A model generated the notes under the pieces. It was not told the DNA's origin. It saw only the letters and a program-made list of their open reading frames with translations, and did no database searches. Source: Octopus sinensis (lineage: Eukaryota). From it: DNA of 64,000 bases. This document shows, piece by piece, positions 1,291-60,700 of the stretch. The translations under genes were made by a program, and so were the position numbers. The stretch is from contig NC_043010.1 of the NCBI RefSeq assembly GCF_006345805.1, forward strand, positions 24,800,001-24,864,000, written 5' to 3'. Numbering within the stretch: the stretch's first letter is position 1; each line of letters opens with the position of its first letter.

Positions 1291-1335
1291 AGCACTAACG
1301 TTGTGTTTCTTTCTCATACGCTTCATCCAATGTAG

Positions 1336-4300
1336 CAAATGGAGAAAAGGTTGGCTGTTCAAAAGTCCCTGCAATCAAGATTTCAGATAGACCGGACAAA
1401 ACTAATCTAATCAACGTAACGGTGACGGTGCCAAGAAGGGATTCTGCAGCCATGGAATGCTATGCCAATGAAGCCTTTGTAAACATTAGTGGTGTTGGCG
1501 ACTTCTGTGATAGTCACTGTCGACTTGGAAAATGTCCTCGTAAATGGTGTGTATGTAACAGAACAGAAGACAAGGGACAAGATTTCAAATGTGTGGTCAA
1601 TAAGTATTATGAGAATATCGATGATCTCTTGACCTGGTGCTATGCACTTTGCGCTACAACACAGTATTGTCCGACACAGTATTGCATTTGCAGTGGCACA
1701 CCACGTGAAATAGCAAATACAGATTTCATGGGACCTGAAGAATTAAAAGAAATTACTTGCAGATTGACTAAGGGTTACGAAGGGATTCCAGGATTGTTAA
1801 AATGGTGCTATCGTTTGTGCAAAGGGCGATATTGTCCACGGACACATTGTATATGCAGTGTCGTTTCAGATACAACACCGGTACCAAAGCCCATACTAAG
1901 ATGTTCAGTGACGAATCGTTACAAACGGCTCCCAGGTGTTTTGAGTTGGTGCTATGTAATATGTGAAAGAGGATACTGCCCAAAATCTTTTTGCATTTGC
2001 ACAAAATCTATCACCCCTCCTCCGACCACACCCAAAATGGAATTGAGTTGTAAAGTGAATAGAAAATTTGGTGCAATACGAGGAATGATGTACTGGTGTT
2101 TAAACAATTGTCCATTGGGTAACTGTCCGAAATCACACTGCGAATGCGCAATGGTCAGAGTCACATCACCAACAACAACTCCAACAACCACACAAACAAC
2201 AAGATTAAGGAGGAGACGAACGATAATAATAAGGAGAAGAATAACGCGCATAATAAGAATAACATTCATAAGAACCCAGCCAGCAAGAGTAGGGACAACA
2301 ATACAACCAAGAACAACGCGAATTATTCGAAGAACAAGGATAATCACACGAATAATAACAATCATTATCAGAAGAACAATACTGCTAAAACGAACAACAC
2401 CTGCATTTACAAGAAATACGACAAAAACAGCAAATGCAACAGCAAGAAGCACGTTGAACAACAGGACAACGACAACGGCAAACACAACAGTGTCGCTAAC
2501 TGTAACAACACAGAATATAACAGCAACAACAGGAGTAACAATACAAAATCAAACTACTACAACACAAACAGCAAACAGAACCATAAAAATAACAACAAAA
2601 CCAACAACCATACCAACAACTAAACCCTCGACAGTACCAACAACCACACCAACAACCACACCAACAACAACACCAACAACACCAACAACAACACCAAAAA
2701 ACACACCAAAAGGACCAACAACCACACCCACTACAACATCAACAAGAACACCTAAAACAACACCAACAACCACACACAGAACAACGCCAACAACAACACC
2801 GACAACAACACAAACAACAACACCAACAACCACACCTACAACCACACCAACAACCACACAAACAACCACACCTACAAACACACCAACAACAACACATACA
2901 ACCACGCCTACAACAACAACAACAACAACACCTACAATCACACTTACAACAACAGCAACACCAAAAACAACACCAACAACCACACAAACAACAACGGCTA
3001 CAACAAAAGCATCAACAACACCTACAACAACACTAACAACAACACCAACAACTACACCAACAACAACACCTAAAACCACACCAACAACGGCACCAACAAC
3101 AACACCTACAACGACACCAACAACAAAACCTACAACCACTCCAACCACCACACCATCAACCGCACCTACAACGACACCAACATCAGCAACCACAACCACA
3201 CCAACAACACCTACAACAACACAAACAACCACACCAACAACAACACCAACAACAATACCAACAACCACCCCAACAAAAACACCAACAACCACACCATCAA
3301 TCACACCAACAACAACACCTACAACTACACCAAGAACAACACCGACAACAAAACCAACAACAACACCAACAACAACACCTAAAACTACACCAACAACAAC
3401 ACCAACAACAACATCAAAAACGACAACAACAACAACACCAACAACAACGCCAACAACAACACCAACAACAACACCTACAACTACACCAAAAACCACACCA
3501 ACAACAACACCTACAACTACACCAACAACAACACCAACAACAACTCCAACAACAACATCAAAAACGACAACAACAACAACACCAACAACAACACCTACAA
3601 CTACACCAAAAACCACACTAACAACAACACCTACAACTGCGCCAACAACAACACCAACAACAACACCAACAACAACACCAACGACAACACCTACAACCAC
3701 TCAATCAACAACACCAACACCATCACCAACGACAGCACCTACAACCTCACCAACAACCACACACTCAACAACACCAACGACGACACCAACAACCACACTC
3801 TCAACAACACCAACGACGACACCAACAACAACACCAACAACAACAACTGCAAAAACACAGACAGAAACACCTACAACCACCCCTGCAATCTCACCAACCT
3901 CCGCACTTATAACCACACCAACAACCACACCTACAACCTCACCAACAACTAAACCTACAACCACAACAACAACACCAACAACAACACCAACAACAACACC
4001 AACAACAACACCTACAACAAAACCTACAACCACACCAAAAACGACACCTACAACCACAACAACAACACCAACAACAACACCAACAGCAACACCAACAACA
4101 TCACTTACAACAACAGCTACAACCTCACCAACAACCACACCTACAACCTCAGCCACAACTACACCTACAACCACACAAACAACAACACCAACAACAACAC
4201 CTGCAACCACACCAACAACAACACCTACAACCAGACCTACATCCACACCAACAACACCTACAACCACACCAACAACCACACCTACAACTACACCTACAAC

Positions 4301-7300
4301 CACACCTACAACCACCCCAACAATCACACATACAACCACGCCAACATCCACACCAACAACCACACCAACAACAACACCTACAACTACAGCAACAACTTCA
4401 ACAACAACCACATCAACAACCACACCAACAACAACACCAACAGCAACACCTACAACCACACTTACAACCCCACCAACAACCAATATTCCAAGCACACCAA
4501 CAACAACACCTGCAACCACACCAAGAACAACATCTACAACAACACCAACAGCAACACCTACAACCACACCTGCAACCACACCAACAACCACACCAACAAC
4601 AACGCCAACAACTACACCAACAACAACACCAACTATCACACCTACATCCACACCTACAATCACACCAACAACGACACCTACAACCACACCAACAACAACA
4701 CCAAAAACAACACCGACAACTACACCAACAACAACACCTACAACCACACCAACAACCACATCAACAACAATACCAACAACCACACCAACAACAACACCCA
4801 AAACCACACCTACAACCACACCAACAACCACACCTACAACAAAACCAACAGCAACACCTACAACCACTCCTACAACCTCACCAACAACCACACCTACAAC
4901 CTCCCTAACAACCACACCAACAACAACACCTACAACCACTCCAACAACAACACCAACTACCACACCAACAACCACACCTACAACAACAACAACAACAACA
5001 CCCACAACAACACCAACAACCACACCAACAAAAACACCTACAACCACTCCAACCACCACACCAACTACTACACCAACAACAACACCCACAACCACACCTA
5101 CAATCACACCAACAACCACACCTACAACCTCCCTAACAACCACACCAACAACAACACCTACAACCACTCCAACCACCACAAAAACTACTACACCAACAAC
5201 CACACCTACATCCACACCAACAACAACACCTACAACCACACCTACAACCTCACCAACAACCACACCAACAACAACACCTACAACCACTCCAACCACCATA
5301 CCAACTACTACACCAACAACCACACCAACATCCACACCAACAACAACACCTACAACCAAACCTACAACCTCCCTAACAACCACACCAACAACAACACCTA
5401 CAACCACTCCAACAACCACACCAACTACTACACCAACACCCACACCTACATCCACACCAACAACACCTACAACCACACCAAGAACAACACCTACAACCAC
5501 ACCAACATCCACACCAACAACAACACCTACAACCACACCTACAACACACCCAACAACCACACCTACAACAACACAAACATCCACACCAACAACAACACTT
5601 ACAACCACACCTACGAACTCTCCAACCACCACACCAACAACATCTAAAACCACACCAACTACTACACCAACAACCACACCTACATCCACACCAACAACAC
5701 ACCTACAACCTCAGCCACAACTACACCTACAACCACACAACAACAACAACAACAACACCTACAACCACACCAACAACCACACCAACTACTACACCAACAA
5801 CCACACCAACATCCACACCAACAACAACACTACAACCACTCCAACAACAACACCAACAACCACACCAACAACAACAACACCTACAACCACTCCAACAACC
5901 ACACCAACAACACACCAACTACTACACCAACACCCACACCTACATCCACACCAACAACACCTACAACCACACCAAGAACAACACCTACAACCACACCAAC
6001 ATCCACACCAACAACAACACGTACAACCACACCTACAACCACACCAACAACCACACCTACAACAACACAAACATCCACACCAACAACAACACTTACAACC
6101 ACACCTACGAACTCTCCAACCACCACACCAACAACATCTAAAACCACACCAACTACTACACCAACAACCACACCTACATCCACACTAACAACACCTACAA
6201 CGACACAAACAACTACACCTACCACAACACTTACGACCACACCTACAACCACACCAACAACCACACCTACAAGCACACCAACAACAGCACCAGCATCAAC
6301 ACCTACAACCACGCCAACAACCACTCCAACATCCACACCCACAACAACACCTACAACAACACCTTCGACCACACCAACAACAAAACCAACAACCTCACCA
6401 ACAACGACACCTACAACAACAACTACAACCTCACCAACAAGCACACTTACAATCTCAGCCACAACCACACCTACAACCACACCAACAACCACGCCCACAA
6501 CCACACCAACAACAACACCTGCAACCACAACAACAACAACACCTACAACCAGACCTACAACCACCCCAACAACCACCACCTACAACCACACCAACATCCA
6601 CACCAACAACCACACCAACAACAACACCTACAACTACAGCAACAACCACACCAACAACCACATCAACAACAACACCAACAACAACACCAACAACAACACC
6701 TACAACCACACTTACAACCCCACCAACAACCACATCTTCAACCTCACCAACAAACACACCACCAACCACACCTACAACCACACCAACAACAACACCAACA
6801 ACAACACCATCAACAACACCAACTATCACACCTACAACCACACCCACACCACACCAACAACAACAACACCAACAACAACACCAACAACAACACCTACAAC
6901 CACCCTACAACCTCCCTCACAAACACACAAACAACGACACCTACAGCCACTCCAACCACCACACCAACTACTACACCAACAACCACACCAACCACTACAC
7001 CAACAACCACACCTACATCAACACAAACAACCACCACTTCAACTACACCTACAACCACACCTACAACCACACCAACAACCACACCTACAACCAGACCAAC
7101 ATCCACACCAACAACAAGACCTACAACAACACCCACAACCACACCTACAACCACACCAACAACCACACCTACAACAAAACCAACAGCAACACCTACAACC
7201 ACTCCTACAACCTCACCAACAACCACACCTACAACCTCCCTAACAACCACACCAACAACAACACCTACAACCACTCCAACAACAACACCAACTACCACAC

Positions 7301-10300
7301 CAACAACCACACCTACAACAACAACAACAACAACACCCACTACCACACCTACAATCACACCAACAACAGCACCTACAACCACTCCAACAACACCTGCAAC
7401 CACACCAACAACAACACCTACAACCAGACGTCCAACCTCACCTACAACCACACACCAACAACCACCACCTACAACCACACCTACAACAACACCAACACCA
7501 CACCAACAAAAACACCTACAACCACTCCAACCACCACACACCAACTACTACACCAACAACAACACCCACAACCACACCTACAATCACACCAACAACCACA
7601 CCTACAACCTCCCTAACAACCACACCAACAACAACACCTACAACCACTCCAACCACCACAAAAACTACTACACCAACAACCACACCTACATCCACACCAA
7701 CAACAACACCTACAACCACACCTACAACCTCACCAACAACCACACCAACAACAACACCTACAACCACTCCAACCACCACACCAACTACTACACCAACAAC
7801 CACACCAACATCCACACCAACAACAACACCTACAACCAAACCTACAACCTCCCTAACAACCACACCAACAACAACACCTACAACCACTCCAACAACACCT
7901 GCAACCACACCAACAACAACACCTACAACCAGACGTCCAACCTCACCTACAACCACACCTACAACAACACCAACAACCACACCTACAACAACACCAACAA
8001 CCACACCAACAAAAACACCTACAACCACTCCAACCACCACACCAACTACTACACCAACAACAACACCCACAACCACACCTACAATCACACCAACAACCAC
8101 ACCTACAACCTCCCTAACAACCACACCAACAACAACACCTACAACCACTCCAACCACCACAAAAACTACTACACCAACAACCACACCTACATCCACACCA
8201 ACAACAACACCTACAACCACACCTACAACCTCACCAACAACCACACCAACAACAACACCTACAACCACTCCAACCACCACACCAACTACTACACCAACAA
8301 CCACACCAACATCCACACCAACAACAACACCTACAACCAAACCTACAACCTCCCTAACAACCACACCAACAACAACACCTACAACCACTCCAACAACCAC
8401 ACCAACTACTACACCAACACCCACACCTACATCCACACCAACAACACCTACAACCACACCAAGAACAACACCTACAACCACACCAACATCCACACCAACA
8501 ACAACACGTACAACCACACCTACAACCACACCAACAACCACACCTACAACAACACCAACATCCACACCAACAACAACACTTACAACCACACCTACGAACT
8601 CTCCAACCACCACACCAACAACCACACCAACAACATCTACAACCACACCAACTACTACACCAACAACCACACCTACATCCACACTAACAACACCTACAAC
8701 GACACAAACAACTACACCTACCACAACACTTACGACCACACCTACAACCACACCAACAACCACACCTACAAGCACACCAACAACAGCACCAACATCAACA
8801 CCTACAACCACGCCAACAACCACTCCAACATCCACACCCACAACAACACCTACAACAACACCTTCGACCACACCAACAACAAAACCAACAACCTCACCAA
8901 CAACGACACCTACAACAACAACTACAACCTCACCAACAAGCACACTTACAATCTCAGCCACAACCACACCTACAACCACACCAACAACCACGCCCACAAC
9001 CACACCAACAACAACACCTGCAACCACAACAACAACAACACCTACAACCAGACCTACAACCACCCCAACAACCACACCTACAACCACACCAACATCCACA
9101 CCAACAACCACACCAACAACAACACCTACAACTACAGCAACAACCACACCAACAACCACATCAACAACAACACCAACAACAACACCAACAACAACACCTA
9201 CAACCACACTTACAACCCCACCAACAACCACATCTTCAACCTCACCAACAAACACACCACCAACCACACCTACAACCACACCAACAACAACACCAACAAC
9301 TACACCATCAACAACACCAACTATCACACCTACAACCACACCCACAACCACACCAACAACAACACCAACAACAACACCAACAACAACACCTACAACCACA
9401 CCTACAACCTCCCTAACAAACACACAAACAACGACACCTACAGCCACTCCAACCACCACACCAACTACTACACCAACAACCACACCAACCACTACACCAA
9501 CAACCACACCTACATCAACACAAACAACCACCACTTCAACTACACCTACAACCACACCTACAACCACACCAACAACCACACCTACAACCAGACCAACATC
9601 CACACCAACAACAAGACCTACAACAACACCTACAACCTCACCAACAACAACATCTACAACCTCTCCAACCACCACACCAACAACCACGCCAACAACAACA
9701 ATTACAACCACACCTACAACAACACCAACAACCACACCCACAACCTCTCCAACCACCACACCAACAACACCACCAACAACAACACCTACAACCACGCCAA
9801 CAACCACTCCAACATCCACGCCCACAACAACACCTACAACAACACCTTCGACCACACCAACAACAAAACCAACAACTTCACCAACAACGACACCAACAAC
9901 AACACCAACAACTACACCTACAACCACACCTACAACCTCACCAACAACCACACCTACAACCTCTCCAACCACCACACCAACAACAACAGCAACAACAACA
10001 CCTACAACCACTCCAACAACCACTCCAACATCCACACCCACAACAACACCAACAACAACACCTTCGACCACACCAACAACAAAACCAACAACCTCACCAA
10101 CAACGACACCAACAACAACACCAACAACTACACCAACAACCACACCAACGACAACACCAACAGCAATACCTACAACCACTCCAACCACCACACCAACAAC
10201 AACACCTACAGCAACACCTGCAACCTCACCAACAACTACACCTACAACCTCTCCAACCACCACACCAACAACAACACCAACAACAACACCTACAACCACG

Positions 10301-13300
10301 CCAACAACTACTCAATCATCCACACCCACAACAACACCTACAACAGCACCTTTGACCACACCAACAACTAAACCAACAACCTCACCAACAACTACACCAA
10401 CAGCCACACCTACATCCACACCAACAACACCTACAACCTCTCCAACCACCACACCAACAACAACACCAACAACAATACCAACAACCACTCCAACTACCAC
10501 ACTAACAACAACACCTACATCCACGCCAACAACCACACCAACATCCTCACCAACAACAACACCAACAACTACACCAACAACCACACCAACGACAACACCA
10601 ACAACAATACCAACAACCACTCCAACCACCACACTAACAACACCTACAACCACGCCAGCAACCACACCAACATCCTCACCAACAACAACACCTACAACAA
10701 CACCTAGAACTTTACCAACAACCACACCTACAACCTCTCCAACCACCACACCAACAACTACACCAACAACCACACCAACAACCTCCCTAACAGCCACACC
10801 AACAACACCTACAACCACTCCAACCACCACACCAACTACTACACCAACAACCACACCTACATCCACACCAACAACACCTACAACCACACCAACAACCACA
10901 CCTTCAACTACACCTACAACCACACCTACATCCACACCAACAACCACACCTACAACCACACCAACATCCTCACCGACAACAACACCTACAACCACACCTA
11001 CAAACTCACCAACAACAACACCTACAACCTCTCCAACCACCACACCAACAACCACGCCAACAGCAACACCTACAACCACACCTACAACCTCACCAACAAC
11101 CACACCTACAACCTCTCCAACCACAACACCAACAACAACACCTACAACCACGCCAACAAACACTCCAACATCAACGCCCATAAAAACACCTACAACAACA
11201 CCTTCCACCACACCAACAACCACACCAACAACGACACCAACAACAACACCAACAACTACACCAACAACCACACCTACATCCACACCAACAACACCTGCAA
11301 CCTCTCCAACCACCACACCAACAACAACACCAACAACAACACCTACAACCACGCCAACAACTACTCAAACATCCACACCCACAACAACACCTACAACAAC
11401 ACCTTCGACCACACCAATAACAAAACCAACAACCTCACCAACAACGACACCAACAACAACACCAACAACTACACCAACAACCACACCAACGACAACACCA
11501 ACAACAATACCTACAACCACTCCAACCACCACACCAACAACAACACCTACAACCACGCCAACAACCACACCAACATACTCAACAACAACAACACCTACAA
11601 CCACACCTACAACTTCACCAACAACCACACCTGCAACCTCTCCAACCACCACACCAACAACTACACCAACAACCACACCACAAACCTCCCTAACAACCAC
11701 ACCAACAACAACACCTACAACCACTCCAACCACCACACCAACTACTACACCAACAACCACACCTACATCCACACCAACAACACCTACAACTACACCAACA
11801 ACCACACCTTCAACTACACCTACAACCACACCTACATCCACACCAACAACCACACCTACAACCACACCAACATCCACACCAACATCAACACCTACAACCA
11901 CACCTACAACCTCACCAACAACAACACCTACAACCTCTCCAACCACCACACCAACAACCACGCCAACAGCAACACCTACAACCACACCAACATCCACACC
12001 AACATCAACACCTACAACCACACCTACAAACTCACCAACAACCACACCTACAACCTCTCCAACCACAACACCAACAACACACCAACAACAACACCTACAA
12101 CCACGCCAACAAACACTCCAACATCCACGCCCATAACAACACCTACAACAACACCTTCCACCACACCAACAACCACACCAACAACGACACCAACAACAAC
12201 ACCAACAACTACACCAACAACCACACCTACATCCACACCAACAACACCTACAACCTCTCCAACCACCACACCCACAACAACACCTACAACAACACCTTCG
12301 ACCACACCAATAACAAAACCAACAACCTCACCAACAACGACACCAACAACAACACCAACAACAACACCTTCGACCACACCAACAACAAAACCAACAACCT
12401 CACCAACAACGACACCAACCACCACACCAACAACTATACCTACAACCACACCAACAACCTCCCTAACAACCACACCAACAACAACACCTACAACCACTCC
12501 AACCACCACACCAACTACTACACAAACAACCACAACTACATCCACACCAACAACACCTACAACCACACCAACAACAACACCTACAACTACACCTACAACC
12601 ACACCTACGACCACACCAACAACCACACCAACAACAACACCTACAACCACACCTACAACCTCACCAACAACCACACCTACAACCTCTCCAACCACCACAC
12701 AAACAACAGCACCAACAACAACACCTACAACCACGCCAACAACCACTCCAACATCCACATCCACAACAACACCAACAACCTCACCAACAACGACACCTTC
12801 GACCACACCAACAACAAAACCAACAACCTCACCAACACGACACCAACCACCACACCAACACAACACCTACAACAACACCAACAACACACCAACGACAACA
12901 CCAACGACAATACCTACAACCACTCCAACCACCACTCCAACAACAACACCTACAACCACGCCAACACCACACACCCCATCCTCACCAACAACAACACCTA
13001 CAGCCACACCTACAACCTCACCAACAACTAAACCTACACCTCTCCAACCACCACACCAACAACAACACCAAAACAACACCTACAACCACGCCAACAACTA
13101 TTCAAACAACCACACCCACAACAACACCTACAACACCTTCGACCACACCAACAACAAAACCAACAACCTCACCAACAACACACCAACAACCACACCAACA
13201 ACGACACCAACAACAACACCTACAACAACACCTTCCACCACACCAACAACAACAACACCTACAACCACGCCAACAACCACACCAACATCCTCACCAACAA

Positions 13301-16300
13301 CAACACCTACAACCACACCTACAACTTCACCAACAACCACACCTACAACCTCTCCAACCACCACACCAACAACTACACCAACAACCACACCAACAACCTC
13401 CCTAGCAACCACACCAACAACACCTACAACCTCTCCAACCACCACACCAACAACCACACCTACAACAACACCAACAACCACACCTACATCCACACCAACA
13501 AACACACCTACATCCACACCAACAACACCTACAACCACACCAACAACCACACCTTCAACTACACCTACAACCACACCTACAACCACACCAACATTCACAC
13601 CAACAACCACACCAGCATCCACACCAACAACAACACCTACAACCACACCTACAACCTCACCAACAACAACACCTACAACCTCTCCGACCACCACACCAAC
13701 AACCACGCCAACAGCAACACCTACAACCACACCTACAACATCACCAACAACCACACCTACAACAACACCAACAACCACACCTACAACATCACCAACAACC
13801 ACACCTACAACTTCTCCAACCACCACACCAACAACAGCACCAACAACAACACCTACAACCACGCCAACAGCCACTCCAACATCCACACCCACAACAACAC
13901 CTACAACAACACCTTCGACCACACCAACAACCTCACCAACAACGACACCAACAACAACACCAACAACTACACCAACAACAACAACACCAACAACTACACC
14001 AACAACAACAACACCTACAACCTCTCCAACCACCACACCAACAACAACACCAACAACAACCCCTTCGACCACACCAACCCCTTCGACCACACCAACAACA
14101 AAACCAACAACCTCACCAACAACGACACCAACAACAACACCAAAAACTACACCAACAACAACACCAACGACAACACCAACAACAATACCTACAACCACTC
14201 CAACCACCACACCAACATCCTCACCAACAACAACACCTACAGCCACACCTCCAACCTCACCAACAACTAAACCTACAACCTCTCCAACCACCACACCAAC
14301 AACAACACCAACAACAACACCTACAACCACGCCAACAACTCTTCAAACAACCACACCCACAACAACACCTACAACACCTTCGACCACACCAACAACAAAA
14401 CCAACAACCTCACCAACAACTACACCAACAACCACACCAACGACAACACCAACAACAATACCTACAACCACTCCAACCACCACACCAACAACAACACCTA
14501 CAACCACGCCAACAACCACACCAACAACCTCACCAACAACAACACCTACAACCACACCTACAACTTCACCAACAACCACTCCTACAACCTCTCCAACCAC
14601 GACACCAACAACTACACCAACAACCACACCAACAACCTCCCTAACAACCACGCCAACAACAACACCTACAACCACTCCAACCACCACACCAACTACTACA
14701 CCAACAACCACACCTACATCCACACCAACAAACACACCTACATCCACACCAACAACACCTACAACCACACCAACAACCACACCTTCAACTACACCTACAA
14801 CCACACCTACAACCACACCAACATTCACACCAACAACCACACCAGCATCCACACCAACAACAACACCTACAACCACCCCTACAACCTCACCAACAACAAC
14901 ACCAACAACCTCTCCGACCACCACACCAACAACCACGCCAACAGCAACACCTACAACCACACCTACAACATCACCAACAACCACACCTACAACAACACCA
15001 ACAACCACACCTACCACATCACCAACAACCACACCTACAACTTCTCCAACCACCACACCAACAACAACACCAACAACAACACCTACAACCACGCCAACAG
15101 CCACTCCAACATCCACACCCACAACAACACCTACAACAACACCTTCGACCACACCAACAACCTCACCAACAACGACACCAACAACAACACCAACAACTAC
15201 ACCAACAACCACACCTACATCCATACCAACAACACCTACAACCTCTCCAACCACCACACCAACAACAACACCAACAACAACCCCTTCGACCACACCAACC
15301 CCTTCGACCACACCAACAACAAAACCAAGAACCTCACCAACAACGACACCAACAACAACACCAAAAACTACACCAACAACAACACCAACGACAACACCAA
15401 CAACAATACCTACAACCACTCCAACCACCACACCAACAACAACACCTACAACCACGTCAACAACCACACCAACATCCTCACCAACAACAACACCTACAAC
15501 CACACCTACAACTTCACCAACAACCACACCTACAACCTCTCCAACCACCACACCAACAACTACACCAACAACCACACCAACAATCTCCCTAACAACCACA
15601 CCAACAACAACACCTACAACCACTCCAACCACCACACCAACTACTACACCAACAACCACACCTACATCCACACCAACAACCACACCTACATCCACACCAA
15701 CATCACCTACAACCACACCAACAACCACACCTTCAACTACACCTACAACCACACCTACAACCACACCAACAATCACACCAACAACCACACCAACATCCAC
15801 ACCAACAACAACACCTACAACCACACCTACAACCTCACCAACAACAACACCTACAACCTCTCCGACCACCACACCAACAACCACGCCAACAGCAACACCT
15901 ACAACCACACCTACAACATCACCAACAACCACACCTACAACATCACCAACAACCACACCTACAACCTCTCCAACCACCACACCAACAACAACACCAACAA
16001 CAACACCTACAACCACGCCAACAGCCACTCCAACATCCACACCCACAACAACACCTACAACAACACCTTCGACCACACCAACAACCTCACCAACAACGAC
16101 ACCAACAACAACACCAACAAATACACCAACAACCACACCTACATCCACACCAACAACACCTACAACCACTCCAACCACCACACCAACAACAACACCAACA
16201 ACAACACCTACAACCACGCCAACAACCACTCCAACATCCACACCAACAACAACACCTACAACAACCCCTTCGACCACACCAACCCCTTCGACCACACCAA

Positions 16301-19092
16301 CAACAAAACCAACAACCTCACCAACAACGACACCGACAACAACACCAACAACTACACCAACAACCACACCAACGACAACACCAACAACAATACCTACAAC
16401 CACTCCAACCACCACACCAACAACAACAGCTACAACCACGCCAACAACCACACCAACATCCTCACCAACAACAACACCTACTACCACACCTACAACCTCA
16501 CCAACAACCACACCTACAACCTCTCCAACCACAACACCAACAACTACACCAACAACCACACCAACAACAACACCTACAACTACAGCAACAACTTCATCAA
16601 CAACCACATCTACAACCACACCAACAACAACACCAACAACAACACCTACAACCACGCCAACAACCACTCCAACAACCACACCTACAACCATGCCTCCAAG
16701 CACACCAACAACAATACCTGCAACCACGCCAACAACAATACCAACAACACCCACAACCACACCAACAACAACACCAACAACAACACCAACAACAACACCC
16801 ACAACCACACCAACAACAACACCCACAACCACACCTACAATCACACCAACAATGACACCTACAACCACACCAACAACAACACCTACAACCACTCCTACAA
16901 CCTCACCAACAACCACACCTACAACGTCCCTAACAACCACACCAACAACAACACCTACAACCACTCTAACCACCACACCAACTACTACACCAACAACCAC
17001 ACCTACATCCACACCAACAACACCTACATCCACACCAACAACCACACCTACACCCACACCAACAACCACACCAATAACAATACCAACAACTACACCTACA
17101 ACAACACCAACTACTATACCAACAACCTCACCAACAGCCACACCCACAACCTCACCAACAACCACACCAACAACTACACCTACAACTACTTCAACCACCA
17201 CACCAACAACAACACCTGCAACCACACCAAGTCCTACACCATCAACCACACCTACATCCACACCAACAACACCTACAACCACACCAACAACAACACCTAC
17301 AACCACACCAACAACCACCCCTACAACCACCGCCTCATCAACGTTATCTACTCTTTATTGCACTACATATTCTCTGACCTCTCTTGTTCCTACATCTGCT
17401 ACTTCATCCGTTTTCTCAATTCCAACCTCTCTGCTACCCTCGAGTGGAACTACCTATTTGTCTACTTCCGTTTTCGCTTCCACTATTTCTTCTCTCATTA
17501 GTACAACCACACCAACCACCCCAGAATCTACAACTCCAATCACTACCCCCACAACGCCAACAACATCACCAACAACAACGCCATCATCACCAGCAACAAC
17601 GTCAATCTCAACTCCAACAACATCTCCAACATCCTCACCAACAACCACAGCAACAACCACACTATCACTAGCTCCAACTACAACACCTTCAACAACACCT
17701 ACTACCACTCCAACAACGGCACCCACATCAACAAACAGTTCTTTTGCAACCAACAGTACCTCTGCAGCAAACAGTACCTCTGCAGCAAACAGTACCTCTG
17801 CAGCAAACAGTACCTCTGCAGCAAACAGTTCCCCAGCAGCAATACCATCTGAAGCCCCCACAAATATTTTTTTGGCCCCCAGTCCTCCTCCTTTCAAAGC
17901 CTTTACTCAATTACCTTATTTCACTATATTGAATCTGTCGGATGGTTTTGCTATATACTGCTATACAAATGTACCTAGTTCGGCTACAGAGCCTTCAAAA
18001 CCGTCTCAAAGTGAACCCGTATCCTCTGATTTCACGTCCGATGTCACTACTCCTCTGACGACATCAAAAGCGCCTTTGACCACAGTTTCGTCTGAGTTAT
18101 CCACCCCTAGTTATGAAACAACGCTTTTGGAAACTTCTTCGCCGTTGTTAACAACTCCAACAACAGCTACGCCTACCACGCCATCTACAGAACAAACTAC
18201 ATCCACTCCAACACCGATAACTACACCAACAACCATACGACCAACAACACTAATAACAACAGCAACCACCATGCCAGTAACAACAACACCAACAGCATCG
18301 CCAACAACAACACCAATATCTACGCCAACAGCAGCGACAACTATGCCAACAATCACGTCAACAACAACTACGCCTACCACGCCATCTACAGTACAAACTA
18401 CATCCACTCCAACACCGATAACTACACCAACAACATTAATAACAACAGCAACCGCCATGCCAGCAACAACGCCTGCAACAACAACACCAACACAATCGCC
18501 AACAACAACACCAACTACCATGCCAACTACCACACCAACAACAACACAAACTACCACACCAACCACCCCTTTTGCAACATTTTCTAGTGCAACAACTACA
18601 ACGTTTGACCAAAGTACAGCTGCAGTTCCTTTATATTCCAGAGTTAAGCTGTGGAAGGTGAATTCGAAATACGTCAGACGTTGCCGTTGTAAATTTCGTA
18701 AATGTCGCCGTTTACATAGTCAGAGTCGACCCCCTTGTCTTTGCATATCGCGACATCTTAGACGTTGTCAATGTCTCAGTAGGGTGAGAAAATTTCGTCG
18801 TTCTCCTACTTTGCGAAAACATCCTCACCGTCGTAGTCACAGACGAATTCACTTCAACCGTCGTTTCCCTCCGCGTCGCAATGCCTCTCGTCACAACACT
18901 CGACGAGGCTACCTACCACCCCGTCGCCGTTCACGAAACCGCATCTCACAAAGGCGAACTTCGCCTCGTTACCCTCTACGTACGCGTTGTCATCACGGTG
19001 GCTCTCGTAGTGTTGACTCTTCAAGAATAAGCCACACCTCAAGACGTCATTTCCAAGTGTTGTCTCAACATTATACGCCACCACAAAGTTAA
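1336..19092 (+). CDS. Gene 1: giant terminal coding exon of a mucin-like protein (5 Cys6 modules + Arg/Ile block + ~5,000 aa Pro/Thr repeat + Ser/Thr region + Arg-rich Cys tail); frameshifted in this assembly
   Basis: The frame is open from 1299. Phase-1 acceptors sit at tgtag|1336 (after a pyrimidine tract) and tttcag|1387. ORFs 1422-6188, 10352-12136 and 16690-19092 share the same PTT content, with non-repetitive unique ends. Stop at 19090-19092 and AATAAA at 19407. No signal peptide is in the window, so the 5' exons lie upstream. Confidence 0.8.
1458..2147 (+). other. Five tandem Cys6 modules (C-X15-C-X3-C-X4/5-C-X4-C-X-C) in gene 1
   Basis: [33 protein letters not shown]; [34 protein letters not shown]; [33 protein letters not shown]; [33 protein letters not shown]; [33 protein letters not shown]. 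Confidence 0.9.
2600..17330 (+). repeat. Coding A/C-rich tandem repeat (ACA/ACC/CCA/CCT codons; PTTT units), ~14.7 kb
   Basis: Direct reading; + strand almost devoid of G; encodes TTPTTTP. Confidence 0.97.
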
Positions 19093-19406
19093 ATTCGCTT
19101 TGACCGGGTTTACTCTGACGATCACAACTGAATACAACCCCAAATTTAATAACACCTGGACTTTGTGGGATAAGTAGTATTTTGTTCGGTCATATAGCAA
19201 CGACTTTCCCAAGGTCAGCATTTTGGGAATATAATCTAATTAAATATAAACCCAAGAAAACAAGCCCCACTGCCAACATTCAGATTAAACGAACATTTCC
19301 TTGCTAACTTTATTCCTATGCAAGTAACTCGTTCTCATGTACTAAGTGAATTCTATAAAGTTCTTTTTTTTTGCAACCATTAGACTGCATTCAAAGGCAC
19401 AATTTC

Positions 19407-19412
19407 AATAAA
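19407..19412 (+). terminator. Candidate polyadenylation signal of gene 1
   Basis: AATAAA ~315 nt after the stop codon. Confidence 0.45.
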
Positions 19413-19860
19413 CAACTAGAAAATCTATTCAACATTCAAGCTGATGAAATAAAATTGGGTGATAAACATGCCCACATCTTACACTTTTTACCGTGGAATA
19501 TCTAATACTTTATATATATATAAATGAACTAGTTACAAAATGGCCATTTAAAAAATTCAATTGTACGGTATTTTCAACGAAAGTTGTAAAGAATGTTAGC
19601 GGAATTGCTGCGCATACCTTTTGTTTGTATGTTACAATTAACTTTCAACATATTTGGTATGGATTTTCTTTATGTTAATTAACTTTTTCCTCTTCGGTTA
19701 CTTATGAAATTTTATCATTCATTATCGCTGGTTGCACTCATTAGACAGCGGCCACGCTGTGGCACTGCTATAAAGGGTTATAGTCAATCATACCGATGCC
19801 AGTACTTATTAAGATGTTATACGTAACCTATATTAGCAATCTAAGTATATATATATATAA

Positions 19861-20390
19861 TAGAAATATTAAAATTACTAAATCTCTCTAAAGGAGATTA
19901 CGGCAGCGTTACTGGATATTAATAGTTATCGCCAAACTAATATGGCAGTCCATAAATATAAGACTAAAGCTGTCGCTGATTAGCTCCAAGAGGCCATCGC
20001 CTCTAGCTAGCTATATGACACACGAACCTGCGTCCATTACAACCTTCGAACAGGGGAGGTCAGCCGCTTCACCTTGCTGGTCAGACATCTGCAGACATGC
20101 TTCAGGGTTGTTGCCCTTTATCAATAAAATCTTCGAACAGACGGTCGGTAGCGACACCTGCTGGGTTTGACTATGCTGCATTGATAAAGGGCAACAACCC
20201 TGAAACATGTCTGCAGATGTCTGACCAGCAAGGTGAAGCGGCTGACCTCCCCTGTTCGAAGGTTGTAATGGACGCAGGTTCGTGTGTCATATAGCTAGCT
20301 AGAGGCGATGGCCTCTTGGAGCTAATCAGCGACAGCTTTAGTCTTATATTTATGGACTGCCATATAGTTTGGCGATAACTATTTATAATA
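19861..20390. mobile_element. PLE-type terminal repeat with inverted partial copy (arms ~19917-20124 / 20180-20385), flanked by (TA)n
   Basis: Near-perfect ~205 bp inverted arms; homologous to 42050-42590; contains a hammerhead motif. Confidence 0.7.
20176..20216 (+). ncRNA. Minimal type-I hammerhead ribozyme motif (variant core)
   Basis: ctgca-TTGATAA-aggg caacaa ccct-GAAA-CATG-TC-tgcag: stem I 5 bp, stem II 4 bp, palindromic stem III ACATGT, GUC site. Confidence 0.6.
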
Positions 20391-20440
20391 TTATATATAT
20401 TATATATATATATTATATATATTATATATATATATATATA

Positions 20441-21713
20441 AATTATTAGAGAGTTATCCACTATGTGGATAACTCTAGTGCTAAAAATAGCTCCGAAGCA
20501 ACCACAGAAGATTTGTTTCCAACTAGAATCAACATACATTAACGTAAGGAAAGTGAAATACAACGAATAAAATAGATTGACTCATACAATTGTTTCATTA
20601 CTAATGTAAATGTAGTTTTACTTACACTTACATCTATAAATCTTCGTAGAGTTTGTCAGAAATGCAATTAATTAGATCGATTCGAGCGTCAAAAACACGA
20701 GCGGTCCAACCAATTACATTTTTAGTTATGTCTCAAATTCCGCGCCAAAAAGCAGGCCTAGACTCATTGGAAACGTATGCCGCATCAAATAAAATATTGA
20801 CTGCCGCGTAGTTAAATTTATAAAATTATAAATGAGGGTGAAAAATCGATATTAATTTACTAATACCATTAATTTAACACCAAGTGGCTTAGCACAAAAA
20901 ACTACGGAGAAAATACAAATTTATACATAAATTATTAGAGAGTTATCCACTATGTGGATAACTCTAGTGCTAAAAATAGCTCCGAAGCAACCACAGAAGA
21001 TTTGTTTCCAACTAGAATCAACATACATTTAACGTAAGGAAAGTGAAATACAACGAATAAAATAGATTGACTCTATACAATTGTTTCATTACTAATGTAA
21101 TATGTAGTTTTACTTACACTTACATCTATAAATCTTCGGTAGAGTTTGTCGTGCTAAGCCACTTGGTGTTAAATTAATGGTATTAGTAAATTAATATCGA
21201 TTTTTCACCCTCATTTATAATTTTATAAATTTAACTACGCGGCAGTCAATATTTTATTTGATGCGGCATACGTTTCCAATGGAGTCTAGGCATGCTTTTG
21301 GCGCGGAATTTGAGACATAACTAAAAATGTAATTGGTTGGACCGCTCGTGTTTTTGACGCTCGAATCGATCTAATTAATTGCATTTCTGACAAACTCTAC
21401 CGAAGATTTATAGATGTAAGTGTAAGTAAAACTACATATTACATTAGTAATGAAACAATTGTATAGAGTCAATCTATTTTATTCGTTGTATTTCACTTTC
21501 CTTACGTTAAATGTATGTTGATTCTAGTTGGAAACAAATCTTCTGTGGTTGCTTCGGAGCTATTTTTAGCACTAGAGTTATCCACATAGTGGATAACTCT
21601 CTAATAATTTATGTATAAATTTGTATTTTCTCCGTAGTTTTTTGTGCTAAGCCACTTGGTGTTAAATTAATGGTATTAGTAAATTAATATCGATTTTTCA
21701 CCCTCATTTATAA

Positions 21714-21715
<2 letters not shown>
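20441..21715. mobile_element. ~490-bp unit in tandem (20441-20930, partial 20931-21150), then inverted and circularly permuted (21151-21715); PLE-terminal-repeat-like; flanked by (TA)n
   Basis: Direct comparison of copies; internal perfect hairpin agagttatccac-tat-gtggataactct; hammerhead-like motif at 21394-21469. Confidence 0.7.
21394..21469 (+). ncRNA. Hammerhead-like motif (U4C core variant, imperfect stem II)
   Basis: actcta-CCGAAGA-...-GAAA-CAATT-GTA-tagagt; stem III palindrome ACAATTGT. Confidence 0.45.
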
Positions 21716-21755
<40 letters not shown>

Positions 21756-21809
21756 TGGTGTGTGTAATAGAATAAGAATAAGAATAAGAATAAGAATAAG
21801 AATCCTTTA

Positions 21810-21988
21810 TATTATGAGCACAAGGCCTGAAATTTTTGTGGGGAGGTGACAAGTCGATTACACCGATCCCAGTGTTTCACTGGTACTTAATTCATCGACC
21901 TCGAAAGGGTGAAAAGCAAAGTCGAGCCCCGGCGGAATTTGAACCCAGAACGTGAAGGCAGACGAAATGCCGCTAAGCTCGCCGCTCT

Positions 21989-21990
<2 letters not shown>
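21810..21990 (-). mobile_element. tRNA-derived SINE (family B: ...gagttcaaattccgccgaggtcgactttgcc...)
   Basis: Matches the other family B copies in the window. Confidence 0.75.
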
Positions 21991-22044
<54 letters not shown>

Positions 22045-22541
22045 CTATGGGATTTATAAATATTTTAATGCATTGCTCTGAGCCTGAGGATATGAACGCG
22101 GAAACATGATCAACACGGTGTCCATGCATACTATGGATTGTATTATAAGCATCCCAGGATTATGGACTATTATTGTAAGAAACATGTGATTTGTGGAAAC
22201 GCGCGTAGCGATGCATTAAAATATTGATAATTTCCACTCATGGTTTATTATCATTATTATTGTTGTTGTTGTTGTGTTGTTATTATTATTATTATTATCA
22301 TAACGGCACAGCTCTGTACAACTCCCAAAACCTGATATTGCCAGTTGGTGCCACTAAGCTGTAGCCTGCATAATAAAATAGGAGCTTTTATTTGCATATT
22401 AAAATACATTTGCTGTAAACGAAGAAGGATATAAATAATATGTGTGTGCGTGCGCGCGTGCGTAGTGCGTGTGAGTGCGTGTGTGTGCGTGCGCGTGAGC
22501 GTTTCAGTGTGTGTATATATATATATATATATATCTTTATA

Positions 22542-22758
22542 TACATGGTTCCGGGTTCATCCCCACTGCGTAGTACCTTGGGCAAGTGTCTTCTACTTTA
22601 GCCTCGGGCCGACCAAAGCCTTGTGAGTGGATTTGGTGGACGGAAACCGAAAGAAGCTCGTCGTATGTGTGTGTGTGTGTGTGCATGTATTTGTTATTTA
22701 TGTCTGTGTGTCACCCCACAATCGCTTAACAACCGATGTTGGTATGTTTACGTCCCCG
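22542..22758 (+). mobile_element. tRNA-derived SINE (family A: catggttccgggttcagtcccactgcg...), partial
   Basis: Matches the full copy at 37195-37670. Confidence 0.8.
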
Positions 22759-24414: not shown

Positions 24415-24625
24415 TCTATTCTTTTACTTGTTTCAATCATTTGACTGCGACTATGCTGGAGCACCGTTTTAGTCGAACAAATCGACCCCAGGACTTATTC
24501 TTTGTAAGCTTAGTACTTATTGCATCGGTCTCTTTTTGCCGAACCACTAAGTTACGGAGACGTAAACACACCAACATCAGTTGTCAAGCGATTTTGGGGG
24601 GACAAACACAGACACACAAACATAT
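24415..24625 (-). mobile_element. SINE family A, 3' half
   Basis: cttgtttcaatcatttgactgcg...gctggagcacc tail. Confidence 0.75.
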
Positions 24626-24626
24626 A

Positions 24627-24674
<48 letters not shown>

Positions 24675-24778
24675 GATTTCGCTTAGCAACAATGATACTA
24701 ATGCTTAGTTGTCAGAACTCAATAAACACATTCTTTAGAATATAGCCTCAAAGACTGCTGTAAGCTAAGATTGATTGA

Positions 24779-25260
<482 letters not shown>

Positions 25261-25360
25261 TTTGATTTATAGGTAAAAAATATACATATATACATAAGTA
25301 TGTGTATATGTATATGCATACAAACACGCACACACACAGACACACATACGCACACACGTA

Positions 25361-25427
<67 letters not shown>

Positions 25428-25927
25428 AGCACAGCACACACCGTACAGTGAAATGTAGTTTCCATTACATGACGGATCGCAAGAACAGCTGAACGCTGGT
25501 TTCACACTTGAATGCTTGAAAAGGCACTAACAACCGTTTTTGAAGGAGAAATGCTCTCGCTTCTATTTTAAAATACTCGGTTTGTGTTTTAATTACTTTA
25601 TATCAATAAAAGTTATAAAATAAACATAAAGATAATTTATCAGAAGAACATTAAACGTAAATACTTTACTAAACTCCATTATTTTTTTTTATTTTATTCA
25701 ATTATACTCTTAAACAGTATTTTTTATATTGTTCTTTTTTTTTATTCTTCTGCTATTCTTTTTGTCTTTTGTTTTACCATCTTTTGACGGTCTGGTGCTA
25801 TTTCCTTTTTGGATAGTTTAATAATTTTGTTTTTATTCGGGAGAGGGGGTTGCTTTTTTGCTTGTATGTTTGTTGTTGCTGTTGTTGTTTGTTTTTGTCT
25901 TCTTTTTTTTCTCAAACTCAAAAGTTG

Positions 25928-25934
25928 TATAAAT
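25928..25934 (+). promoter_or_regulatory. Candidate TATA box of gene 2
   Basis: TATAAAT ~175 nt upstream of ATG 26105, followed by a UTR-like stretch without ATG. Confidence 0.45.
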
Positions 25935-26104
25935 TCCAGCTAGAGAGAGACACCTGCCGTCAAAGAGAAGCTGACGCTCACCAAAGTTGTCGTCTTGAAA
26001 AGCTTTGGGTGTCTTCCTCTTCCTAATTTACAAAACAAAAAAAGAAAACAAATAATAGTAATCGTAATAATAATAACCGAAAGCTTTACTAAAATCTCAA
26101 AGCT

Positions 26105-26236
26105 ATGATTAAACCAACGTCTACTTCGCTTCTGATCTTGAATCAGTTTCTACATGTCGCATTCTTCATGCTATGTGCAGCATCATTTTCCAATGCGTTA
26201 ATCACTTTCCAATCACCAGACAAGGATCTTTGCAAT
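26105..26236 (+). CDS. Gene 2 exon 1: signal peptide + start of mature chain
   Basis: MIKPTSTSLLILNQFLHVAFFMLCAASFSNA/LITFQSPDKDLCN followed by a consensus phase-0 donor aat|GTAAGT. Confidence 0.65.
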
Positions 26237-26354
26237 GTAAGTGTCACAAATTCTTACCTTTTATTTGTTTATTCTTATACTGATTTTTGTTTTTTATTCA
26301 CTAAGATATTTGAGCACAGATATGGTCTGTTGTTTAGTCTTCTGGAGAAAAGAA

Positions 26355-27830
26355 TATTCTTTTCTACTCTAGGCACAAGGCTCGAAATTTTGGGGGAGAG
26401 AGGGCCAGTCGATTAGATCGAACCCAGTACGCAATTGATACTTAATTCATCGACCCCGAAAGGATGAAAGGCAAAGTCGACCTCGGCAGAATTTGAATTC
26501 AGAACGTAAAGACAGACGAAATACCGCTCAGCATTTCACCTGGCGTGCTAACGTTTCTGTCAGCTCGCCGCTTTACTGGGGAAAAATATCCTTTTCTGCT
26601 CTAGGCACAAAGCCTGAAATTTGGGGGGAGGGGGCCAGTCGATTAGATTGACCCCAGTACGCATCTGGTATTTAATTTATCGGCCCCGAAAGAATGAAAG
26701 GCAGAGTCAAAAATACTTGCTGTTTGATAATTTAAAACTGCTGTACAGACAAGAACCTCCTTACACCATGTAAATTGTACTTTTTTTTACATGAATGCAT
26801 TCCTTCCACTTGTAATTATTTGTCTTCCATTTTTCTGTTATATATTACATTATTGTCCACAGGGGGCTAAATATAGACGGGACAAACAAAGGGATTAAGT
26901 TGATTATATCGACCCCAGTGCGTAACTGGTACTTATTTAATTGACTACTACAGGATGAAAGGCAAAGTCGACCTCGGCGGAATTTTGAACTCAGAACGTA
27001 GCAATAGACGAAATACTGCTAAGCATTACGCCCGGCGCGATAACGATTCTGCCAGCTTGCTGCCTTAATAAGTATTATAATATTTATCTCTTTAATGCCC
27101 ATGGGATGGGGGCTAAATATAGAGGGAACACACAAGGACAGACAACGAGATTAAGTCGATTATATCGACACCAGTGTATAACTGGTACTTATTTAATTGA
27201 CCACGAAAGAATGAAAGGCAAAGTCGACCTCGGCAGAATTTGAACTCAGAACGTAACGGCAGACGAAATCCCGTTAAGCATTTCGCCCGGCGTGCTAATG
27301 TTTCTTATTTCTTTACTGCCCACAAGGGGCTAAACGCAGGGGGGACAAAGAAGGACAGACAAACGGATTAAGTCGATTATATCGACACCAGTGCGTAACA
27401 GGTACTTATTTAATCGACCCCAAAAGGATGAAAGAGGCAAAGTCGACCTCGGCGGAATTTGAACACAGAACGTAGCGACAGACGAAATACCTATTTCTTT
27501 ACTACCCACAAGGGGCTAAACACAGAGAGGACAAACAAGGATAGAAAAACAGATTAAGTCGATTACATCGACCCAGTGTGTAACTGGTACTTATTTAATC
27601 GACCCCGAAAGGATGAAAGGCAAAGTCGACCTCGGCGAAATTTGAACTCAGAACGTAGCAGCAGACGAAATACCTATTTCTTTACTGCCCACAAGGGGCT
27701 AAACATAGAGTGGACAAACAAGGACAGACAAACAAGGACAGACAAACGGATTAAGTCGATTTGAACTCACAACGTAACGGCATTTCGTCCAGCGTGCTAA
27801 CGATTCTGTCAGCTCGCCGCCTTAGCCTGC
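26355..27830 (-). mobile_element. Cluster/concatemer of ~7-8 SINE family B units
   Basis: Repeated ggcaaagtcgacctcggcggaatttgaactcagaacgta core with ~190-bp periodicity in 27110-27780. Confidence 0.85.
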
Positions 27831-28339
27831 TCATGAAATTAACATGCAAATGGCTGAACACTCTACAGACACACGTACTCTTAATCTAGTTCTCGGGAGG
27901 ATTCAGCGTGACATGATGTGGCAAGTTTGGCTCTAGCTGACAGAATCGTTACCGCGATTAATGCGTAGCAGCATTCCGTCCGTCTTTACGTTCTGAGAGT
28001 TCAAATGCCTCCGAGATTGACTTTACCTTTCATCCTCTCGAGGTCGATAAAATAAGTACCAGTAGTACCCTGCCCCGAAACAGATGGCTTTGTGCCACAA
28101 TTTGAAGCCGATATTCCGCAGAACTATCATTGCTTACGATACTGTGTAGTAGCTTCAAAGCAGAATAGGCTTCCCTCCACAAACCCATTGGTGCCGAAAT
28201 TTTTCTCGTGAATGAAATTGCCTGAAAATTCACAGATTCTATTGTTTTGACCTAAATAACAACTGCAAAAATTTCATTTAAATCCGTTTGATAGAGACTG
28301 CATACGCGTTAAGAACATGCTTCATTCTTTGATACAGAT

Positions 28340-60304: not shown

Positions 60305-60700
60305 ATACTCTTTTCTACTCTAGGCACAAGGCCCGAAATTTGGGGGAGGACACCAATCGATTAGATCTACCCCAGTACGCAGCTGGTACTTAATTTATCG
60401 ACCCCGAAAGGATGAAAGGCAAAGTCGACCTCGGCGGAATTTGAACTCAGAACGTAATGACAAGCGAAATACCTATTTCTTTACTACCCACAAGAGACTA
60501 AACACAGAGAGGACAAACAAGGACAGAAATGGATTAAGTCGATTACATCGACCCTAGTGCGCAACTGGTACTTATTTAATCGACCCCGAAAGAATGAAAG
60601 GCAAAGTCGACCTCGGCGGAATTTGAACTTAGAACGTAGCAGCAGGCAAAATACCGCTAAACATTTCGTCCGGCGTGCTAACGTTTCTGCCAGCTCTCCA
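60305..60700 (-). mobile_element. Two tandem SINE family B units
   Basis: Core match twice. Confidence 0.85.

Follow-up and report, generated by a model that had tools for sequence, protein, structure and literature searches.

Organisation of the locus

We analysed a 64,000-nt stretch of Octopus sinensis DNA (contig NC_043010.1, positions 24,800,001 to 24,864,000 of the forward strand; hereafter, the window), in which positions 1336-19092 (+) had been described from the letters alone as a single coding exon for a giant mucin. The parts listed in that sequence-only reading were all found in their places: five six-cysteine (Cys6) modules, a cationic block, a Pro-Thr-Thr array, a Ser/Thr spacer, and a cationic tail containing Cys (Table 1). 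A short paralogue, gene 2, lies on the same strand between 37.7 and 44.5 kb. On balance, we favour the interpretation that 1336-19092 is the giant terminal exon of a real, secreted octopod mucin gene, which would descend from a family joining lytic polysaccharide monooxygenase (LPMO) domains to Cys6 modules and would anchor its product to chitin, and that the frame shifts in the array are probably consensus errors.

The exon start at 1336 sits behind a pyrimidine tract and an AG (acceptor ...ttcatccaatgtag/C, with the slash marking the junction), and the alignment of the Argonauta protein P0005 to the window starts at 1335/1336, the same point. The first ~40 residues of the exon are the end of a domain (the N-domain) encoded by earlier exons beyond the window; this segment, 1336-1457, matches positions ~113-150 of the N-domain profile, a profile that aligns to the C-terminal part of molluscan LPMO domains. 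The frame closes with a TAA at 19090-19092. No convincing signal-peptide exon was found within 1-1335. An (AT)58 microsatellite (1081-1196) lies directly upstream of the acceptor, and an ATG at 1271 opens a signal-peptide-like open reading frame (ORF; 1271-1336) that is in another frame than the exon and is probably due to chance. Positions 1336-19092 can thus be taken as the last exon of the gene and not as the whole gene. The earlier proposal of a very large mucin-type gene on one giant exon is supported by the codon signature of the array and by an Argonauta frame of more than 11.6 kb, and needs amending in that this exon is only the last.

The Cys6 modules are 33-34 aa long and follow the pattern C-x15-C-x3-C-x4/5-C-P-x3-C-x-C (regular expression and alignment). 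They are read in frame 3 (translated from 1299) and the tail in frame 1. The cationic block (83 aa; 23 Arg, 19 Ile, and 19 Thr) and the tail (150 aa at 18640-19089; 41 Arg, 12 His, and 8 Cys) both have an isoelectric point (pI) of 12. The spacer (433 aa) has a pI of 4.1 and contains, at 17732-17842, six copies of an 18-nt repeat (90% match; Tandem Repeats Finder, TRF) encoding (NSTSAA)n, a run of N-glycosylation sequons. Pfam searches (E <= 1) of the N-terminal 300 aa and the C-terminal 596 aa detected no VWD, CK, SEA, or other family; the VWD-C8-TIL assemblies and the C-terminal cystine knot of gel-forming mucins were not found at either end, in agreement with the earlier view that the protein is unlike the classical members of that class. 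Pfam and PDB sequence searches with the N-terminus, the cationic block, and the C-terminus gave no match.

Coding signal in the PTTT array

TRF returned one array with a period of 12 nt, the unit AACAACCACACC, and 1,235 copies (76% matches, 2% indels). The plus strand between 2 and 18 kb is almost free of G (GC skew ~ -0.94). When its frame was followed, the array comprised 4,916 codons, mostly Pro-Thr-Thr-Thr (PTTT), with no stop and with 65% Thr, 23% Pro, and 6% Ser. A long Pro/Thr/Ser tandem repeat forming most of the protein, which is a feature of the mucin class, is therefore present. In 942 in-register four-codon units, second codon positions departed from the consensus CCA ACA ACC ACA in 2-6% of cases, first positions in 5-11%, and third positions in 13-41%; most of the first-position changes were to T or G and yielded Ser or Ala. 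A satellite without coding function would lack such a three-fold pattern; therefore, the PTTT repeat is coding.

A 14.7-kb A/C-rich satellite lying beside a small Cys-module gene might be open merely for want of T and G, and the fact that all three plus-strand frames and several minus-strand frames of the array are open for kilobases is what such a satellite would produce. We give this explanation hardly any credence and regard it as effectively refuted, because the constraint on the array is periodic, the array is in frame with the modules upstream and with 584 further non-repeat codons downstream, where frame 1 alone is open, and the arrangement is kept in frame in Argonauta, where the nucleotide unit differs (ACA ACA CCA ACT) and the encoded peptide is the same.

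Array copies were also compared with each other by ungapped window scans and pairwise alignment. Internal duplications on the kilobase scale, with 95-100% identity, were seen between 4800-7120 and 7135-9620 and between 13400-15000 and 14630-16300, at lags of ~2,335-2,981 and 1,230 nt; these could be real higher-order repeats or partly assembly duplication. One repeat segment of the Argonauta array recurs at a 2,001-nt lag.

An orthologue in Argonauta hians

Among the proteins retrieved with the Cys6 profile (see below) is P0005 (GAB1603675.1, annotated as hypothetical) from Argonauta hians, with 53% identity to window 1335-1961 and an N-terminal hydrophobic leader, MGYKSDWIILLPSVAYLVMVSTLTVAEA, which we judged by eye to be a putative signal peptide. 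Its locus (L001 10001-22723, on contig BAAFZT010000032.1; Argonauta positions are those of L001) has three exons (Table 1). The third, preceded by a pyrimidine tract and AG, encodes five modules, a Thr-rich linker of ~175 residues, and then PTTT repeats; frame 2 is open from 11084 to 22723, the end of the locus examined, giving 3,880 codons. All 31 Cys of the N-terminal part of the window align with Argonauta Cys (31/31), and the five modules share 55% identity. The Argonauta array (12638-22722 and beyond) has the same period of 12 with 85% matches and 0% indels, and Viterbi tracking of its frame gave no switch in 10.1 kb. The shared exon start, the 31 Cys, and the one-frame array of Argonauta, taken together with the codon constraint in the window, show that the gene is real. 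A further family member lies upstream on the same Argonauta locus (4653-6256).

As the sequence-only reading had anticipated, the gene is missed or broken in annotation in the two relatives examined. In Argonauta, two models divide what is one ORF: a 461-aa model, in whose last exon the repeat is translated in a wrong frame, and a 7,868-aa model, which begins at an internal Met (14498) and keeps to the open frame. It follows that the true product has about 9,000 residues. The other relative, the close homologue P0001, is a 350-aa fragment with 85% identity over its full length. The O. sinensis locus of the paralogue P0017 (L002) lacks the gene and shares with the window only short interspersed repeats.

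Frame breaks in the assembled array

As assembled, no frame runs open across the whole region between the Cys modules and the stop codon, and the earlier view of a single uninterrupted reading frame had to be given up. The longest stop-free stretches are 1299-6188 in frame 3, 6142-10371 in frame 1, 7244-12136 in frame 2, and 10708-19092 in frame 1; the Cys-module ORF ends at 6188, after ~160 residues of mostly out-of-frame reading rich in His, Gln, and Pro. Because all frames tend to be open in an A/C-only repeat, the PTTT-coding frame was followed by three-state Viterbi tracking of the encoding of Thr, Pro, and Ser. Between 5697 and 13178 the frame switched 16 times, in 15 cases by -1. A repeat readable in one frame was thus found in the Argonauta orthologue and not in the window.

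The copy at 5911-7120 was 99.5% identical over 1.2 kb to the in-frame copy at 8397-9617. The two differed by five substitutions, one 12-nt indel, one 3-nt indel, and four single-base indels, and the last four coincided exactly with the frame switches at 5910, 6578, 6846, and 6902. The other switches cluster in three patches (5560-5930, 7280-7560, and 12680-13200), which show about 6-10% mismatch and many 1-nt gaps relative to their nearest copies and could be real decayed segments. Elsewhere in the array, copies with 85-100% identity exist. In three cases, a triplet of -1 shifts brings the frame back within ~50-140 nt. Given the strong deletion bias, the indel-to-substitution ratio near one, and the intact codon signature flanking the breaks, the most likely reading of the 16 frame shifts is single-base consensus error within a near-identical repeat of a long-read, gap-scaffolded assembly; they are probably not features of the gene.

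If the shifts were real, the locus would be a recent pseudogene or would yield a truncated product of ~1,600 aa ending at 6188, made up of the Cys modules, ~1,050 aa of PTTT, and the ~160 mostly out-of-frame residues. The 16 switches, the want of one open frame, and the clustering in patches that differ by ~10% from their nearest copies are in keeping with this explanation. However, we consider it improbable: ~12 kb of the array retains a perfect codon signature and a PTTT frame without a stop, 15 of the 16 changes are 1-nt deletions, and four single-base indels against five substitutions is a ratio typical of consensus error and not of neutral decay. Moreover, the frame is restored by the three triplets, 6 kb downstream (including the 584 non-repeat codons) is still open, and the Argonauta orthologue is intact.

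Table 1: Positions of the main features in the window and in the Argonauta hians locus.
Feature	Position	Strand	Evidence
Exon start and last strand(s) of truncated LPMO-like N-domain	1336-1457	+	Acceptor, Argonauta alignment, profile match
Cys6 modules (five), with short linkers	1458-1556, 1590-1691, 1758-1856, 1902-2000, 2049-2147	+	Regular expression, alignment, profile
Cationic Arg/Ile/Thr block	2202-2450	+	Translation, composition
Thr/Asn-rich non-repetitive linker with N-x-T sequons	2451-2590	+	Translation
PTTT mucin array, 12-nt unit CCA ACA ACC ACA	2591-17330	+	TRF
Zone with 16 frame switches, probable consensus errors	5697-13178	+	Viterbi frame tracking
Frame switches	5697, 5735, 5828, 5910, 6578, 6846, 6902, 7499, 7536, 12077, 12836, 12858, 12884, 13040, 13070, 13178	+	Viterbi
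Ser/Thr/Pro-rich spacer, mostly non-repetitive	17341-18639	+	Translation, composition; frame 1 alone open
Arg-rich tail and TAA stop	18640-19092	+	Frame 1 open, shuffling
Gene 2, exon with LPMO-like N-domain	37740-38030	+	
Gene 2, last exon	43954-44511	+	
Argonauta locus, putative signal-peptide exon	10001-10126		
Argonauta locus, N-domain exon (truncated LPMO-like domain)	~10418-10747		
Argonauta locus, third exon	begins 11258		Pyrimidine tract and AG in front

The Cys6 module family

A profile built from the seven Cys6 modules of the window (those of the giant gene and gene 2) retrieved 289 proteins (best E = 5e-141). All matches whose source names an organism were from molluscs or annelids, namely, gastropods (Biomphalaria, Elysia, Littorina, and Nucella), bivalves (Tegillarca, Pinctada, and Mercenaria), cephalopods (Argonauta and O. 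sinensis), and the annelid Paralvinella. The 243 distinct modules in these matches share a consensus with six invariant Cys, an aromatic residue at position 8, a Trp before Cys2, and a Pro after Cys4, and alignments showed that the window modules have the six-Cys spacing, the Trp, and the Pro of the family. Of 115 members scanned with Pfam, 18 carry LPMO_10 and two carry GH18, and no other partner domain recurs; the modules stand in tandem, C-terminal to the LPMO domain or between GH18 halves. Many members also carry stretches rich in Ser, Thr, and Pro. A further homologue search, run with an alignment of modules, gave a single candidate but no match. The recurrent partners, the tandem placement, and the conserved aromatic residues suggest a polysaccharide-binding role, and by association the ligand would most likely be chitin. 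The matrix-binding N-terminus postulated in the sequence-only reading is in line with this, since both recurrent partners point to chitin.

The module had no match in Pfam. Peritrophin-A (CBM14; CBM, carbohydrate-binding module) was among the families not matched, and the Cys spacing of the module, C-x15-C-x3-C-x4-C-x4-C-x-C, also differs from it. A PDB profile search with the module yielded no significant match; the hits, at E = 0.26-4, were scorpion beta-KTx/scorpine-type toxins and cyclotides, the best (E = 0.26) being of the beta-KTx type. An AlphaFold2 (AF2) module model derived from 78 modules had a predicted local distance difference test score (pLDDT) of 88 and a strand-helix-strand topology, and a Foldseek search of the PDB with the 37-aa module model gave no match. 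The Cys pattern C...CxxxC...C...CxC and the modelled topology recall the cysteine-stabilised alpha-beta (CSab) motif of invertebrate defensins and scorpion toxins, with CxxxC beginning in the helix while CxC occupies the final strand; we treat this as a resemblance and not as membership. A CSab fold would predict the disulfides C1-C4, C2-C5, and C3-C6. In contrast to CSab peptides, to which no significant sequence (E >= 0.26) or structure match was obtained, the Cys6 modules have a much shorter C3-C4 loop and are tandem parts of large proteins and enzymes.

This resemblance raises the question of whether the modules are defensin-like effectors or protein-interaction units, in which case the N-terminus would be antimicrobial or oligomerising and not a chitin anchor. 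The shared Cys pattern and topology, the toxin and cyclotide hits (all insignificant), and the fact that an enzyme domain is missing from most module proteins speak for such a function. Nevertheless, the recurrent partners are chitin-active, the tandem C-terminal or inter-GH18 placement is CBM-like, the modules have kept an aromatic residue at position 8 and a Trp before Cys2, and neither the PDB nor the Foldseek search provided a significant match. We therefore consider a defensin-like function rather unlikely and prefer polysaccharide binding.

The truncated N-domain and the short paralogues

The octopod N-domain (window 1336-1457 together with the exon of gene 2 at 37740-38030) aligns to the C-terminal two thirds of molluscan and annelid LPMO domains, including a C-x2-C-V-L-Q-W motif, although the homology is visible by iterated profile only. 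It lacks the N-terminal third of the LPMO domain, including the copper-binding His1, and in P0005, P0017, and P0011 the leader is followed by EFEPP, ITSNI, and DPDCG, respectively, with no His1 (cleavage sites judged by eye). In Pfam, the gene 2 exon scored 15.2 bits against LPMO_10 (cut-off 23; E = 0.035), and the N-domain of P0005 gave no LPMO_10 match. The AF2 model of the N-domain had a pLDDT of 72.6, and Foldseek returned only generic Ig-like beta-sandwiches, with the LPMO-like structure 6ibh at rank 15 (E = 0.02). We thus class the N-domain as LPMO-derived and presumably non-catalytic, and not as an LPMO.

Gene 2 encodes the LPMO-like N-domain in its first exon, which has canonical splice sites (atatttag/A ... 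AAG/gtaagt), and two Cys6 modules (44098-44196 and 44206-44304), a hydrophilic tail, and a stop in its last exon. A 100-N scaffold gap (43853-43952) removes the start of the last exon, and two homologues, P0008 (from a 1.1-kb Logan contig; 90% identical) and P0152 (UniParc UPI0006952ED0; 97%), have ~16-22 extra residues at the gap (...PTSKEYVKCYP / ...PTPKEYVKCYA). No convincing signal-peptide exon was found upstream of 37740. Gene 2, O. sinensis XP_029645183.1, and Argonauta GAB1603672.1 are short paralogues that combine the N-domain with Cys6 modules and short Thr-rich linkers.

Between the two genes lies an element on the minus strand that resembles a long interspersed nuclear element (LINE), with a reverse transcriptase (29258-30889), an endonuclease (30829-32031), and a zf-CCHC ORF1 (32880-33740); a second reverse transcriptase fragment (40189-41103, +) lies inside the long intron of gene 2. 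The short interspersed repeats common to the window and the O. sinensis L002 chromosome (82-95% identity) are at 24469-28692, 37202-39197, 49796-51432, and 60305-60705.

The cationic block and the Arg-rich tail

The cationic block is kept in frame in P0001 and is absent from the Argonauta orthologue; it is therefore a lineage-specific insert. The block of the earlier description is thus present in the window but is no conserved element of the design. The block is purine-rich, with a 24-nt periodicity at 2206-2257, and its codons AGA, ATA, and ACG suggest a possible origin from Thr codons altered at the second position.

The tail is open in the mucin frame for 150 codons, compared with 3-13 stops in the other five frames, and only three of 2,000 dinucleotide shuffles were free of stops (p ~0.0015). 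Its CpG observed/expected ratio is 1.54 and its GC content 49%, versus 0.95 and 35% directly downstream; the CpG excess appears to reflect CGN codons for Arg. Several R-x-[KR]-R-like motifs occur in the tail and are possible convertase sites. A homologue search with the C-terminal 420 aa gave 8,000 low-complexity candidates and no significant match, a result that cannot exclude an orthologue; the Argonauta locus examined ends short of the 3' end of that gene. Of the cross-linking cationic C-terminus proposed in the sequence-only reading, what is shown is a tail that is open and in frame. A minus-strand reading of the tail is acidic and protein-like, but it contains 6-13 stops and was rejected.

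It is conceivable that the Arg-rich tail does not belong to the protein, with coding leaving at a donor such as AAG/GTGAAT near 18660 for a downstream exon or ending earlier. Such a donor-like sequence does lie at the start of the tail; the composition (27% Arg and the CpG excess) is unlike the rest of the gene, the homologue search was without a match, and the minus strand reads as protein-like despite its stops. Against this, the mucin frame is open where the others are closed, few shuffles are open, and the stretch between 19.1 and 37.7 kb yielded no further module or exon of the gene. We judge the exclusion of the tail to be unlikely and keep it as the C-terminal end of the proposed protein.

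Proposed identity and mode of action

Based on these results, the gene would go back to a mollusc/annelid family of proteins in which an AA15-type LPMO domain is combined with small Cys6 modules. Truncation of this LPMO domain would have taken place in octopods, where one family member would have gained a PTTT array of 15 kb or more. The protein is taken to be secreted because the orthologue P0005 has a putative signal peptide. The truncated LPMO-like domain and the five Cys6 modules may act as a multivalent anchor on chitin or a chitin-containing matrix, and the PTTT domain of ~4,900 residues would be densely O-glycosylated and form a hydrated bottle brush of about one micrometre (an estimate at ~0.25 nm per residue). 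The Ser/Thr spacer and the Arg/Cys-rich tail would be the free end and may bind polyanions or form disulfides. Such a product would coat, lubricate, or protect chitinous surfaces, as the chitin-binding mucins of the insect peritrophic matrix do. Chitin binding and O-glycosylation are inferences, as are the secretion of the protein encoded in the window and any function of its tail.

Several of the observations above weigh against this interpretation. In the assembly, the frame is broken, and the noisy patches in which many of the switches cluster may be real decay. The cationic block has no counterpart in Argonauta, and the search with the C-terminus returned no homologue. The Cys6 module is without a Pfam or Foldseek match, the fold model of the N-domain led to generic beta-sandwiches ahead of an LPMO-like structure, and the argument for chitin binding is one of domain co-occurrence.

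A more far-reaching version, which we put forward tentatively and do not hold to be the likelier case, is that Cys6 is an uncatalogued lophotrochozoan carbohydrate-binding module with a CSab-like fold and that octopods turned a non-catalytic LPMO/CBM protein into a single-exon mucin of 6,000-9,000 residues whose glycan brush is tethered to chitinous cuticle. The peritrophic-mucin principle would then have been invented independently in lophotrochozoans, and the gene would be a clear example of mucinisation outside the mammals.

Comparison with known systems

Insect intestinal mucins of the peritrophin type combine peritrophin-A domains with Pro/Thr/Ser (PTS) repeats, as in Trichoplusia ni IIM and the Drosophila PerA mucins (PMC2515642). 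The octopod protein resembles them in its presumed secretion, in joining several small six-Cys modules to long PTS repeats, in its putative association with chitin, and in its presumed role as a glycan brush tethered to a chitinous matrix. In contrast, its modules are not CBM14/peritrophin-A, their Cys spacing and predicted fold differ, the gene would come from an LPMO family, and the mucin domain is far longer (~4,900 aa in the window and more than 8,000 aa in Argonauta). As chitin-binding mucins are already known, what would be new here is the use of an uncatalogued Cys6 module and an LPMO-derived domain as building blocks.

The AA15 LPMOs of invertebrates were shown to be widespread in molluscs, and many of them end in a CBM extension (Sabbadin et al. 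2018, PMC5823890). Most C-terminal extensions were reported to be assignable to known CBM families, with fusions to CBM1 and CBM14 being named and the Cys6 module not being named (PMC5823890). Molluscan and annelid members bear Cys6 modules C-terminal to LPMO_10, and in alignments the octopod N-domain covers the C-terminal two thirds of LPMO_10; unlike these enzymes, it has neither the N-terminal third nor His1, and its match to Pfam LPMO_10 falls short of the threshold or is missing. Our literature searches turned up no account of either the gene or the Cys6 module, and proteomics of Octopus skin mucus lists generic "mucin-4/19-like" entries only (PMC11431876).

The vertebrate gel-forming mucins (MUC2, MUC5AC, MUC5B, and MUC6) likewise have a giant central or terminal PTS-repeat exon with internal duplications prone to copy-number change, and they are commonly collapsed or fragmented in assemblies and annotations. 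However, the octopod ends are devoid of VWD, C8, TIL, and CK in Pfam; therefore, any oligomerisation would not proceed by the VWD/CK route. The gain of exonic PTS repeats by non-mucin genes, or mucinisation, has been described in mammals (Pajic et al. 2022, PMC9417175). The situation at the present locus is similar in that short paralogues share the N-domain and Cys6 modules while one member bears the giant array; it differs in that the parent would be a cephalopod LPMO/CBM family, with the direction of change being presumed.

In both assemblies examined, the gene is either broken or split, and in P0001 it appears as a 350-aa fragment, so inventories of cephalopod mucins are likely to be incomplete. 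The Cys6 unit is widespread, occurs on molluscan and annelid LPMOs and chitinases without a Pfam model or a solved structure, and could represent a new CBM family. The locus would show how a binding protein derived from an enzyme gave rise to a mucin, and short paralogues next to it allow a comparison. If the interpretation is correct, the protein would be a candidate glycoprotein coat for the chitinous surfaces of cephalopods, such as the gut cuticle, sucker lining, radula/beak, and stylet.

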